64,000 nucleotides of DNA. Origin: Geosiphon pyriformis uo1 (lineage: Eukaryota > Fungi > Glomeromycota). The translations under genes and the position numbers were made by a program. The notes under the pieces were generated by a model. It saw only the letters and a program-made list of their open reading frames with translations, was not told where the DNA came from and did not search any database. The first letter of the stretch is position 1, and each line of letters starts with the position of its first letter. Below, one piece after another: positions 17,731 through 42,300 of this stretch. Where the stretch lies: the NCBI GenBank assembly GCA_016748015.1, contig JAAOMT010000694.1:341063-405062 (forward strand), given 5' to 3'.

Positions 17731-18860
17731 TTAAGAATGATTGACCGTTACCATAGGAGGACATTGTGATATCCTTTGTCCTAAATAAGGACCAATATGT
17801 GATGGGAAAGATTCTTCATTCGATGCATTCTCGGTTCCACCATTGCATTCCTAAATATATAAAAAATGGTTAATAATTGTTAAAGAATTGTTCAGATCAA
17901 AAACAAATTTTCGATTCTATAACAACTAACTTTGCTTTTTAACTTTATCCCGCTCGTGGTTTTGAGGCCTGGGCATAAATAAATGTCCGATTATTATCGG
18001 AAGTAGCACAGCCACAATCTTTTGGCGATATCCAAAGCTCCTGTCCATGGTGTAAATATTGTGCTTTCTGATAACTCATTGGATACTTGGGTATAAAATT
18101 ATTATAATATGTCACTCTATATATTTTTAGATTCTTAAAGGAGCTTAAGAGCGAATTGGTAGTTTCCCGAATCGAGGTTCACCATATGTGTAAACTTCAA
18201 TTTGAGATAATTCAGGCGCTTTTACTGTCAAGAGTTCGAAAGCTCCAAGTACAACAAACACTAAAAATTAATGTCAATTAGATGAGTCTTGTCGAGAAAT
18301 TCGATCAAAATATAAATATTTATGTACCACCACCAAGCCCATGTCCAACAAAACTCAAATTATGTGCTGGCGGAATTCCTTTTCGTCTATGGCCAATTTG
18401 ACGCCTTAACTCTGTCCACCCAAGTTGAGATTTAAGGGAAAAATTTTCATCGATCATCAGATCATTTATACTTTTGTATCGCGTTTGGAGTAGTTTTTCC
18501 GAGGTAACTTCAAAATCTAACTCTTTGGCACGAATCTGGATCAAGAAAATTTGGTTTTTACGTATGCGTGTTATTTTCACTAAGATAGATGATTGAGATT
18601 TGAATTTTAAAAAAAAGAAATTTTGGGGAATTAATCATAAAGTAAGTAATATAATGTATATAATGTAAGATGCTAATACCATAAATTCAAGATGCTTCAC
18701 TAGCGAAAAGACTGAATTTTTTCAATTTTTTCATAAACAGATTATCCGATCGGGGTAAACCTTTTTTTAGATGATATGTTGCTTATATGACGCTTCGATC
18801 GGTTCCAATAGCCATAATAATCATAATCGCTTTCATGAGATAAATTTTACTTGAGTGTTG
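17731..18860 (-). pseudogene. Class 3 lipase-like paralog 1 (GHGLGG), disrupted
   Basis: Spliced reading: ...LKKFSLFASEAS*...LSFVGHGLGG|VFVVLGA...VYTYGEPR...IYRVTYYNNFIPKYP...HHGQELWI..DCGC...|ECNGG...SHIGPYLG...*. Several frameshifts and a TGA; GT-AG introns at the same positions as in the paralogs. Confidence 0.82.
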
Positions 18861-21800
18861 AACTACACTTTTCTAATGATTCTACTCGAATTTAACTATA
18901 TTATTGACTTTAATCTAAAGATAAAAAAATATTTAATTTTTACTTTTCAATTTTTTTTTATAATTTCGAAGGTTTTGCTCATATGGTTAATAAAAAAATA
19001 AATAGTCAAATCTATAACTAGATTTTCAACTGTGATATTATAATTAACAAAAACTAAATTGTTTTTACAATTAATTTCTTTTTAATAAAAATAATTAATA
19101 GCCTCAAAATCAATCAGCCATTAGCTCTGTTGAATTAATTAACTGTCTTTATTTTTAAAATCCAAAATTAATTTTTTTTTTAGAAATTAAATTATTTTGC
19201 TTGTAATATTAATAATGCTTGATTTAAATATAATTTAACAACAAAACTTTGAAAATTTATTCTTATTACATTGGAGTAGTTTCAAAATAGTCTTTTTACA
19301 AAACTTTCAAAAAAAAGTCTGTAAACCTTTTTTTATTAGGGTAAATATTGCTTGTTTAATTATCTTTTGGAAAATCAGAGTAATACGATAGCAAAAATTT
19401 TATTACCCTTGATTTACATAATATAAATCTTAGATTTTGCAAATTCCGATAGCCCTATGAATAGTTTTTAACTTATATTTCTTGATTAAAAATCTTTTTA
19501 GAAATTGAATTGAACTTTTTTTAAGCAAAAATTCTCTTAATAAGCAGATAATTTTTTAAGCATTTTTTCCAAATAACCTTTTTAATCTTATATAAAGTTC
19601 AATATATAAGTTTTTTTTTTACAATAAATTTTATTTATGAATAAAACTGATAGTATTGAGACACATAAAGCATTTGAATGTGGTTTTAGCCTGGCATTTT
19701 CTGTAAAGTCTCTTACAAATAATGGCACATATTACTCTAATCAATGTCTCTCAATATATTAATGACAAAATAATCTTAAGTTTTTCTAAAATTATGGAAC
19801 TGGGTTTGAATATAGTATTAGCAGAGATCAAATCTCTTTCTTAGAAAGTGGTTCTGTATTAGATATTACTCTGTTGGTTACTAAACCTGAATTTAATAAA
19901 CCATAGAATTTTAATTAAGAATCCTCTTGGTTCACTCAGGATTTTTCATGATTTTTTAAACAAATGTTGCTTTTGCCTACCTCTGGTTAGAATTTGGGTA
20001 ATTTTCTTTATGACTTCTTGCTAAATAATACCATTTAGGAAGCTTATAAGGTAGGCAAGGATTCGAATATTACTGTCTTTCAAGTTGGTTTACTGAAATT
20101 TAAAATATATTCGAAATGAATATATTTTTCAAACTTTTCTCTCTTCATTTTTGGTGGACCAGTTTTTGCAAAGCTTACTTTATCATAGATAAAGTATTTA
20201 ATAATTCTACAGTCGATTCAACATTACCTTTACCAAATGATATGATTATCCTGTGGTCTAATAAACCTACATTATTCAAATTAAAATGTCAGTAAAAAAT
20301 GTTTTCATATATCAAAAAAATGAGGTTACTTTGAATTTATAATAAAACTTCCAGCATAATTGCCATATTGTTTATTAGAAACAAATGGAAAAACAATATC
20401 AGTTACAGTAATAAAAAGTGCTTTTAACATATCTAACACACAATATTTTGCTAAAAATGATTGGATAATAGCAGGTAACTCGAATTTTATAATGAAATTT
20501 CAAGTACAGTTACCCTATTTCTAATCCAGATGAAAGAAAAATTGAATAAAATCTATCTGATATATTCTAAATTTGAGTTTTTATTTTATAAAAATATTAG
20601 CCTTATACATTGGTTTCTTACGTTTAACCCCGGACTGTAATTTCTTTTTCAAAAGGGCTTTCAAAAATAGAGACTAAAAAATTTATTGAGCAACTGCATA
20701 TCAAATTATTCTGACTGAACTTAACACAAATTAGAATGTCAAATTCCCAGTTAATCATTTTCACTAATCAAAATACTTCAAAATAGTAATTCATTAGAAA
20801 TTGCTAATAATTTAAATACAATGGTTCAAAATAAAGCTATTAATGTACATTAATTTGAGTCTTAATATTGCATTTATTTTAAGAAATAAAAAAGAGTTGA
20901 AAAGGGAATCTATCGAAATCATTGATCATAAGATTGATAACCGAGATTAGTATAATCAGGCCAAGAAATTTTACGACTCCATAGTTCTTTCAAAAGTGAT
21001 TTAAGATAATTGGTTCACTCCCATTAGCATTCATTCACATACGAGTTTTTTATATGAAGCTTTCCGGTTTCAACTTAAACATCGATAAGCATGAATTAAT
21101 CTTCAAGATTTAATTTTAATCAAATCGTATGTCATATAATCCTTTTTTTAACAAATAATTTTTTCAGCAAAATTTGGGAAGAATATAAATTTTATCTAAT
21201 TGAAATTGCTATTATTCCAATAATATTGATATCTCTATATTTTAATAGGAAGTAAAAAAAATCCCAAGATATGTGTTTTTTTGTAGTTAAATTGTATTTT
21301 AAATTATAATTTAATTGGATATTTAATAATTTTTTATTCATTTAAGGTAATAGTTTTGCATTTTTTTCGTTACATTGGTCCTAGTCGATATTGTAATTAA
21401 TATCATATTCACTACTTCTATCATTTAAATTTTGTTTCAAGAAAATTATTTTTTAAAATGTAAAAATAAGATTTAGAGAAAATAAAGCAAAAAATATTAT
21501 GTTATTAATTATTTAATAGGTTTATTTTTTGAACAATCGGAATTTTAATTCAAGTCAATAAAAAAAAGAAAGTTTTGCAATTTTTAAATATATAAGAAGA
21601 TAATGATCTAATGTTTAATGGAAATCTGTTTTATTAAAGAGTTACTGCCTTAAAGCTGAGGTTATGTTTTGTTTGAAAAATTTTATTCTTTTTGATTCTC
21701 TCAAAGCTTTTATATTGAATAATTATTAAAGTATTTTTATATTATCGCACGTAAAAACCAAAACACAATCTAAAGTTTATAATTTTAATTAGAGGAAACA

Positions 21801-40969: not shown

Positions 40970-42300
40970 ATGGGGAATTCTTTTTGTCTAAATTATTCCA
41001 AAAAGTATCGATATAAACAATATGTAGTTGCTGCTGTTTTTTTATCATATTTTTTTTATTGTAGGATAAATTATGCCCAATCTAAAGAAATTAGGTAAGT
41101 GTGTGGAAATGAACAGTCAAATTCATCTTTGAAAAAGGCAAATTCTGCAGTAAAAATTTGCATTTTTTCCATCAAATGCTTTAGAAATCAAATAAAGTTG
41201 TACAAAAGTCAAATGGACGATTTAATAACGCCGACCTATACGAATTCAACCGTGAACTTGAAAAGAAACATCTTGAACACTTGGCAAGGAAAGATTCTTG
41301 TTCAAGACACAAGATTGCTCAGTTTTTTTCAAAAAATGGCACATTACGCAAAAGCAGCATATCATGTTAAAGGATATGGAATTAAGGGTATAAAATTTGT
41401 AGGGGCAAATTTCTGAAATTATGAAAAAAGCTCAAATTTTTACTGATTTTCAGCCGGGTTGGCCTTCGAAGACAGCACAGAAGAAATCCAAAATCGAATT
41501 GTTGTGTATATTAAGGGTGAAAGACTTTATAGTGAGCTTAAAGATTTCGGCTACTTAGTTTCTTATGGAGAAATGCAAACTGGACTTGTAAATTTGAATT
41601 GGTATCAAGATTTTGAGCGACATAAAGCAAGATTATTAAACCTGATTGAACAGTGGAAAATTCGAAATAAAGTAGGTGATGCAGAGGGTTCAATAACATT
41701 TACAGGACATGGAGTCGGTGGTGGTAGGTTTTCAAAGAAGCTGTTTGTCAATTTTACTTTTCCAAATTTTCCAAATGTGAACTGAAATTAATCAATAAAT
41801 ATCTAGTCTACGCTATGTTCCTGGCCCTAGCTTACAAGAGGGATAACCCTGGATACTCAATAACCATTGTTACATTTGGTGCACCACGTCCAGGCGATCA
41901 GACATTTGCTTTCTATATTGCTAAAGAGATACCTGAAATCTATCGAATCACAAATTATGATGATTTTGCACCACATATGCCAGCCGATAAAGGATTATAT
42001 AGACATCCAAATATGGAATTTTGGATTTCCCAGATTGTTGATTGTAACAGTTGCTCAGATGAATGGCCAATTGTGTTCAAGTGCTTGCCAAAAGGAAGGA
42101 AATCTTTTAAGTTATGGTTTCAATACAATGAAGAAAATTCGGTTGGTACTCAACTTGGTTTTTTTTCTTATCTTTGGTTACAGAGTAATAACTCGAAAAA
42201 ACTATTTTTCTAGAGATGTCATGCTTCAACTTTGAGATCAATAAGTATTATGAAAACGTTTAGACATCTTGGTCCTTATTTTGGGGTAATGATGACATGA
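40970..42300 (+). CDS. Class 3 lipase-like protein, paralog 3, nucleophile Ser replaced by Gly (GHGVGG)
   Basis: Five exons with GT-AG introns: MGNSF...VVAAVFLSYFFYC...|NQIK...LKR...KMAHYAKAAY...|AGLAF...IVVYIKG...ITFTGHGVGG|VYAMFLAL...VTFGAPRPGD...RITNYDDFAPH...HPNMEFWI...EENS|RCHAS...RHLGPYFGVMMT*. The frame is intact. Confidence 0.9.

Follow-up and report, generated by a model that had tools for sequence, protein, structure and literature searches.

Geosiphon pyriformis is the one known fungus of the Glomeromycota with a cyanobacterium inside its cells, and we know of no fungal molecules that take part in its partner recognition. Its genome is reportedly over-represented in Lipase_3 genes. 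In the 64,000-nucleotide stretch of this genome analysed here (the window), three Lipase_3 paralogs, G2 and G3 intact and G1 broken, carry glycine at the nucleophile position of the catalytic site. The locus raises the question of whether such genes are unusual enzymes, decaying remnants of enzymes or proteins put to another use.

Three lipase-like genes and their active sites

The three nucleophile elbows lie where a sequence-only reading of the window had placed them (Table 1), and GH[SGAC]xG[GA] occurs at these three places only in all six frames. Their register, set by alignment to GHSLGG of the Thermomyces lipase (1dt3), is unambiguous. The glycine codons differ between the copies, as had been noted (GGG in G1 and G2, GGA in G3), and the intron said to be common to them is a phase-1 GT-AG intron following GG/G in each. 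The oxyanion Ser/Thr is likewise absent, its place being taken by Pro in FKGP (across an intron, G2), Glu in IKGE (G3) and Lys in IRAK (G1), while both intact genes keep the triad Asp and His. The Cys pattern and N-terminal hydrophobic segment ascribed to both intact genes hold in full for G2 only: G3 has neither Cys of the N-to-C-terminal pair, and its segment is weak (13-residue mean hydrophobicity 2.1 vs 3.2 in G2). G1 has stops in exon 1 and a frameshift near 18165 in the assembled sequence, and falls outside the pseudoenzymes as defined by an intact gene. A fourth Lipase_3 paralog was rejected by a search of the window from which positions 35092-35136 were left out.

G3 (66 bits) and G2 (51 bits) exceed the Pfam Lipase_3 (PF01764) cut-off of 22 bits despite their Gly elbows, so that domain annotation would mislabel them, as the sequence-only reading had warned. 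The same scores, together with the Asp and His, are what would be expected of ordinary active lipases with a displaced nucleophile, or of genes in which Gly is a sequence error. We regard this as very improbable: 117 distinct domains have Gly, and its codons vary among them, the alignment to 1dt3 leaves no doubt about register, and a conserved Ser or Cys near the elbow, sought across the family as a substitute nucleophile, was not found.

Table 1. Features of the three Lipase_3 paralogs (window positions)
Feature	Position	Strand	Remarks
G1, broken serine-less paralog	17731..18836	-	read from sequence
G1 exons	exon 1 to 18680; 18579-18328; 18260-~17925; 17850-17731	-	exon 1 degenerate, 5' limit approximate
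G1 elbow GHGLGG	18346-18329	-	
G1 elbow Gly codon	18340-18338	-	
G1 triad Asp site	18100	-	Asn
G1 triad His	17799	-	kept
G2, intact gene, 426 aa	31316..32927	-	exons 32927-32483, 32404-32354, 32257-32027, 31951-31527, 31444-31316; all GT-AG; NCBI KAG9286982.1 (G9A89_001220) is a partial model, 338 aa
G2 hydrophobic segment, residues 10-25	32853..32900	-	putative signal or anchor, from sequence
G2 dibasic KR, residues 105-106	32610..32615	-	ahead of lipase domain; candidate Kex2 site, processing predicted
G2 Pro167	32253..32255	-	oxyanion Ser/Thr position
G2 elbow GHGIGG	32045-32028	-	
G2 Gly239 (GGG)	32037..32039	-	nucleophile position
G2 triad Asp308	31755..31757	-	kept
G2 triad His401	31394..31396	-	kept, within family HxGPYF motif
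G3, intact gene, 339 aa	40970..42300	+	NCBI G9A89_001221; exons 40970-41094, 41185-41387, 41454-41723, 41807-42141, 42214-42300; 5' exon uncertain, alternative 316-aa open model begins at 41073
G3 weak hydrophobic segment, residues 18-30	41021..41059	+	
G3 dibasic KR, residues 68-69	41261..41266	+	candidate Kex2 site, processing predicted
G3 Glu132	41519..41521	+	oxyanion Ser/Thr position
G3 elbow GHGVGG	41705-41722	+	
G3 Gly196 (GGA)	41711..41713	+	nucleophile position
G3 triad Asp252	41962..41964	+	kept
G3 triad His329	42265..42267	+	kept

Extent and descent of the family

G1-G3 sit in a single clade of at least 152 domains (SH-aLRT 99), which is shown to have arisen once from a fungal lipase fold of the Mucoromycota type; the introns in common and the fungal identity of the nearest folds speak against a bacterial source of the serine-less family. 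All of the roughly 40 clade members identified by name or locus come from Geosiphon. A profile word search of low sensitivity gave nine matches, every one Geosiphon; an exon-only homolog search, under length and word limits, gave zero; a metagenome scan returned distant lipases only (at most 40% identity), and the ESM Atlas search led to generic Lipase_3 clusters. Within the depth of these searches the family numbers well above 100 genes and is seen only in G. pyriformis. We found no description in the literature of serine loss in the Geosiphon lipase-like family, of its motifs or of relevant pseudo-lipases.

At the nucleophile site, 117 of 151 family domains have Gly, 16 Ala, nine Ser and four Asp, with Phe, Arg or Tyr also admitted in some members. 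Among the Lipase_3-like metagenome loci, serine is present in 62 of 63, and it is found in 18 of 20 domains of the outgroups; the Gly elbows are therefore not a matter of chance. Tabulated in this way within one clade, the loss of serine is family-wide and old, as the reading from the window alone had proposed. The residue at the elbow switches between Gly, Ala and Ser. The Ser-bearing members, G9A89_010511 and G9A89_001456 among them, look scattered and secondary; their codons TCA and AGT are a single step from GCA and GGT. The Gly of G2 was itself probably re-derived from Ala, since its closest paralogs carry GCA. The idea that the Ser-bearing members are surviving active lipases was also considered, and their grouping with active lipases was rejected (AU p 4.9e-6).

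The oxyanion Ser/Thr is present in nine of 131 family domains vs 13 of 17 outgroup domains, and none of the members checked combines Ser, Asp, His and the oxyanion Ser/Thr. The triad Asp (148 of 152, 97%) and His (116 of 127, 91%) are kept at about 27% mean identity. Beside the His, the HxGPYF motif is specific to the family (92-96% conserved, not in outgroups), and Tyr101 and the lid Trp (71%) are conserved too. The conservation of the Asp and His exceeds the clear need of a pure scaffold, an observation that sits uneasily with a binding-only reading.

This pattern invites the proposal that the family consists of serine-independent enzymes, in which a His-Asp dyad activates water or the substrate as a general base, for hydrolysis or for lyase or decarboxylase chemistry, and Gly gives room at the former site of the Ser hydroxyl. 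Catalysts with an alpha/beta fold and without Ser exist, tomato MKS1 being a precedent. We nonetheless consider such an activity unlikely. In 40 of 131 domains the residue at the oxyanion NH site is Pro, which has no backbone NH, and in the others any residue occurs there; the elbow admits Asp, Phe, Arg and Tyr; the His is replaced in about 9%; and more than 100 diversifying copies would be unusual for a single reaction. Arg, Glu and His residues of purely structural role are equally conserved as the Asp and His, and conservation alone is therefore no proof of catalysis.

Selection and gene maintenance

G2 and G3 are intact genes under purifying selection despite the loss of catalytic residues. 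The earlier claim that these genes are conserved rather than decaying holds for both and for most of their paralogs, G1 being broken. Among the G2-like genes six of eight are intact and two of eight frameshifted; exon indels are mostly multiples of three, those of introns are not; splice sites are intact, and Cys and core residues are invariant across paralogs that are 25-30% identical. In the G2 subfamily omega under M0 is 0.55-0.82, and omega = 1, the value at which the sequence-only reading would have fallen, is rejected (p 4e-5), as it is far more strongly for the G3 trio, though this trio is saturated. Between 35 and 47% of G2-subfamily sites have omega below 0.1, while 3-15% of codons diversify with omega 3-11. 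The preference for M2a over M1a (p 1e-3 to 3e-8, matched by 0 of 40 null simulations) comes from five sequences and purpose-written code, and the family undergoes gene conversion. Sites put forward as selected map to loops and to one helix and show no clear placement at the pocket.

These data bear on the possibility of mostly neutral birth and death of dead lipases with little present function. The broken G1 and the frameshifted G2-like genes fit such a process, as do an exon divergence close to that of the introns, simple pairwise Nei-Gojobori dN/dS values of 0.6-0.96, apparently near neutral, and a genome that is 64% repeats (PMC9453076). The near-neutral averages arise because purified and diversifying classes are pooled in them, and the rejection of omega = 1, the strongly constrained site class, the frame-keeping indels, the intact splice sites and the invariant Cys and core all speak against neutrality. 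The neutral reading is improbable overall, and for the intact members already largely refuted. One possible RNA run contains 0.10 of G2's words.

Fold, secretion and possible roles

Structure models (pLDDT 82 and 80) keep the fungal lipase fold, that of G3 matching Rhizomucor lipase 3TGL with Z 27.2 and rmsd 2.4 over 229 residues. Like fungal class 3 lipases (3TGL, Thermomyces lanuginosus 1DT3, Rhizopus 6A0W), the family has a GHxxGG elbow, TFGxPRxG, the Asp and His, two homologous disulfides and a putative prepro-like, dibasic N-terminus. Unlike them it lacks the Ser nucleophile and oxyanion Ser/Thr, has V[DE]xxW for the groove motif VHxGF, HxGPYF for HxxYF and an extra CxC, and is greatly expanded in a single species. 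The neighbours of the lid Trp are polar or Arg at formerly hydrophobic positions, and the lid of G3 is shortened.

Secretion of the proteins is likely, judging from their N-termini. A hydrophobic N-terminus and a dibasic site are clear in G2 and its subfamily; across the family KR or RR precedes the lipase domain in 28 of 48 models vs 15% of background windows, and a clear hydrophobic N-terminus is seen in 18 of 48 NCBI models, many of which are without exon 1. The hydrophobic segment would direct the protein into the secretory pathway, with cleavage at KR as in a prepro-lipase.

The pocket suggests that the proteins might carry or store lipid, taking up cyanobiont fatty acids or monoacylglycerol, or forming a coat on lipid droplets or the symbiosome. 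Its inner wall is still hydrophobic (positions 159, 197, 226, 254, 257 and 258), a Ser-to-Ala lipase takes up oleic acid (PDB 1gt6), and arbuscular mycorrhizal fungi import host lipids (PMC9620820). This role seems doubtful to us: V[DE]xxW replaces VHxGF, the lid residues are polar or Arg, a possible Arg-Asp pair may close the acyl groove (Fisher p 9e-6, but only p ~0.13 in a phylogeny-aware sign test), and the carriage of nutrients calls for no diversifying selection.

The reading we prefer, at a probability of roughly 0.55, is that G2 and G3 are secreted pseudo-lipases of a Geosiphon-expanded clade that would serve in binding or as decoys rather than in hydrolysis. In favour of this, lipases engineered from Ser to Ala continue to hold ligands (oleic acid in PDB 1gt6, ferulic acid in 2bjh). 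The emptied and remodelled active-site cleft, or the variable surface of the mature domain, would bind an outside target such as an acyl ester, a molecule on the surface of a partner or enemy, or, where the protein acts as a decoy, an enzyme or inhibitor of foreign origin, and the many divergent copies could form a repertoire of specificities. The lipase nucleophile occupies a strained backbone conformation, and Gly would be favoured at the elbow for this reason; Asp and His may be kept as part of a buried polar network or as ligand contacts. Action toward Nostoc is plausible, but on circumstantial grounds only. We speculate, as a rather unlikely extension, that a dead lipase became a variable secreted recognition repertoire, with a logic like that of lectins or antibodies, to select, engulf or control Nostoc or other microbes, or that a serine-free His-Asp reaction acts on cyanobacterial envelope molecules.

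The plant immune regulators EDS1, PAD4 and SAG101 use a Lipase_3-type fold with no need for lipase activity, and match structurally (Z 16-20); they are far more distant than the fungal lipases and not orthologous. EDS1 and PAD4 keep the elbow Ser, and theirs is an intracellular family of few members bearing a C-terminal EP domain, whereas G2 and G3 end just past the His motif with only Lipase_3 found. The parallels drawn with EDS1/PAD4 and GID1 in the sequence-only reading are no more than loose. Among alpha/beta-hydrolase pseudoenzymes, NDRG (Gly), ABHD5/CGI-58 (Asn), neuroligins and dipteran yolk proteins have lost the elbow Ser and kept the fold for binding, adhesion or storage; they are other families, none of them fungal Lipase_3 or a diversifying repertoire of more than 100 copies. 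Phytophthora sojae XLP1 is a secreted inactive hydrolase paralog kept as a decoy through interaction with another organism, but it differs in being a glycoside hydrolase and in acting as a lone decoy. For Geosiphon, more than 100 serine-less, apparently lineage-restricted, probably secreted and diversifying lipase folds provide concrete candidates for partner recognition that can be assayed. The annotation would be corrected as well: the apparent lipase expansion is probably for the most part not one of lipase activity, which would change the reading of Geosiphon lipid nutrition.

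Three paralogs in the window

The glycine-bearing nucleophile elbows (GHxxGG, where active class 3 lipases have GHSxGG) that the sequence-only reading had described in three Lipase_3 paralogs, here G1, G2 and G3, are all borne out, with the Gly codons GGG, GGG and GGA and, as also claimed, an intron (phase 1) directly after each motif. The window holds no further elbow motifs, and a scan with the family profile finds no fourth paralog in it. G2 and G3 are indeed intact; G1, which has stops in exon 1, a frameshift near 18165 and Asn in place of the triad Asp, is broken, barring an assembly error.

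The N-terminal hydrophobic segment ascribed to both intact genes is strong in G2 (residues 10-25) and weaker in G3. N-terminally, G2 also has a linker modelled at low confidence and a KR dipeptide at 105-106, and G3 has KR at 68-69, an architecture similar to that of Mucorales prepro-lipases. Of 48 long models, 28 have KR or RR ahead of the domain, compared with 15% of background windows, and a C-terminal hydrophobic tail is absent from G2 and G3. The structure models have a mean pLDDT of 82 (G3) and 80 (G2), and that of G3 matches Rhizomucor lipase (Z 27.2) and EDS1/PAD4 (Z 16-20). Two paralogs (L004a and L005) lack 243 linker bases in frame.

Features in the window and on related contigs
Feature	Position	Strand	Description
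Retroelement-like ORFs	1-4130	-	Interrupted by stops; GC-rich (40-46%)
G1	17731-18836	-	Lipase_3 paralog
G2	31316-32927	-	426-aa open frame; five exons, every intron GT-AG; KAG9286982.1 (Geosiphon pyriformis)
G2 linker repeat	32660-32730	-	(GP)n/(GA)n; shorter or missing in paralogs
83-aa ORF between G2 and G3	36654-36905	+	Signal-like N-terminus, two KR sites, three Cys in mature part; no Pfam match
SEL1/TPR-like repeat gene fragments	39230-40000	-	By resemblance; piece searched has no Pfam match
G3	40970-42300	+	339-aa open frame; five exons, every intron GT-AG; G9A89_001221 (Geosiphon pyriformis)
Class I SAM-methyltransferase genes	45250-48520, 61180-62330		Several, spliced; Methyltransf_25 matches at 47494-47835 and 61525-61944
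Inverted paralogs, contig JAAOMT010000521.1	L002:10565-12126, L004:10716-12260		Two paralogs
Metagenome cluster, contig Ga0114972_10027574	L071:744-3925		Three adjoining intronless Lipase_3 ORFs; elbows GHGIGG, GHGTGG, GAGLGG

Size and range of the family

A profile built from the exons that follow the elbow in G2 and G3 recovered both genes as publicly modelled, together with well over 100 relatives; the family counts at least 152 domains. All of the roughly 40 members identified by name or locus come from G. pyriformis, the deepest and longest branches included; matches outside the family are lipases from other eukaryotes or unnamed samples, nearly all Ser-bearing, and a metagenome scan gave distant lipases only, with Ser in 62 of 63. 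This suggests, on the best 150 of 1470 matches, that the family is restricted to Geosiphon, though a small Ambispora family could escape. Public models (L001, L002, L003, L004, L087 and G2) frequently leave out the exon coding for the signal peptide, skip other exons or merge tandem genes into multi-domain proteins, and annotation-based counts of secreted members are therefore too low.

The metagenome cluster has Gly or Ala-Gly where His-Ser is expected and lacks the Geosiphon motifs; it is apparently an independent serine-less lipase cluster.

Catalytic site and loss of serine

The tabulation of the nucleophile site over 152 family domains is dominated by Gly (117) and also holds Ala (16), Ser (9), Asp (4) and other residues (5). 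The loss of the oxyanion Ser/Thr described for the window extends through most of the family (Ser or Thr in just 9 of 131 domains, Pro in 40), as does the retention of the triad Asp (148/152) and His (116/127) described for the intact genes, against 32% for the commonest residue of the median alignment column. The elbow, the FRGS loop and the Asp all align clearly with Thermomyces lipase. The family alignment has no conserved Ser or Cys near the elbow as a substitute nucleophile. Thus ordinary lipase activity fits poorly and is extremely improbable; a lipase label misleads, as had been anticipated, since these proteins are Lipase_3 by homology and do not qualify as active class 3 lipases. That members carry out serine-free chemistry is rather unlikely, even with the retained Asp-His pair and a new motif adjoining the His (HxGPYF, which the outgroups lack). 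The lid keeps its Trp and has acquired polar residues and an Arg, and the acyl-groove motif VHxGF has become V[DE]xxW; this remodelling of the groove speaks against a plain lipid carrier, which we consider quite unlikely.

In the family alignment A3, a lid Arg/Lys goes together with an acidic residue (Asp/Glu) where the groove His used to be in 60/66 cases versus 15/31 (G3 positions 140 and 156). A salt bridge is possible, the co-occurrence not being significant once kinship is allowed for; G3 itself has neither residue.

In a quick tree covering 50 rows, the family including its Ser-bearing members forms one clade apart from active lipases (SH-aLRT 99), in line with the expected monophyly. 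Grouping the Ser members with active lipases was rejected (AU p 4.9e-6). They are scattered across the tree (7 changes for 8 rows), and the four Ser codons read are TCA twice (adjoining GCA relatives), AGT once (one step from GGT) and TCT once; all four members have the family intron and none an aligned oxyanion Ser/Thr. The clade, the scatter and the codons together make it most likely that Ser was lost once and that the elbow site then toggled among small residues. The Ser-bearing third domain of the multi-domain protein P0051 is placed near the family base, and there may have been a second early loss. The view of the change as ancestral rather than decay is supported for the loss of Ser. 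The Gly of G2 itself probably derives from Ala.

Selection and putative function

The exons of G2 were projected onto seven paralogous loci, which share its five-exon layout and a hydrophobic N-terminus, the latter often absent from public models. Six of the eight genes in this group are intact, and exonic indels are mostly multiples of three, whereas intronic ones are not. Exon divergence about equals intron divergence and simple dN/dS is 0.6-0.96, close to the value of 1 that would speak for neutral expansion, but M0 gives omega 0.65 for five intact genes and rejects omega = 1 (p 4e-5). Under the site-class models, omega is near 0.08 for about 40% of sites and near 5 for another class (M1a vs M2a, p 3e-8), a result reached by 0 of 40 null simulations; the omega>1 class is robust to three codon-frequency models and to removal of gap-adjacent codons (3-5% of sites, p about 0.001). 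All these codon models were fitted with an in-house implementation to a small set of sequences, with multi-base mutations uncorrected, in a family that undergoes gene conversion. The near-neutral simple ratio is explained because the codon models separate purified and fast classes. Omega = 1 is rejected for the G3 trio as well, though synonymous sites are saturated. Neutral expansion is thus a poor fit and very unlikely.

The inverted paralogs L002 and L004 are identical from exon 1 through exon 2, intron 1 included (0 of 527 bases differ), but diverge by 7-13% in both exons and introns 3-4, which points to recent gene conversion or assembly collapse.

The best-fitting reading, with a probability of about 0.55, is that these are putative secreted binding, recognition or decoy proteins, because the lipase fold is retained as a conserved, disulfide-bonded scaffold, the acyl-enzyme machinery is dismantled, and the many copies carry a fast-changing minority of sites. 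From family occurrence alone, the target could be Nostoc; soil microbes, endobacteria or grazers are equally possible. We are not aware of another serine-less Lipase_3 repertoire like it in fungi, and a literature search found no report of a comparable one. Other nucleophile-less alpha/beta-hydrolase pseudoenzymes exist and, by analogy, the family most likely works like them. Engineered Ser-to-Ala lipases hold ligand in PDB entries 1gt6 and 2bjh, and therefore a pocket can outlast catalysis.
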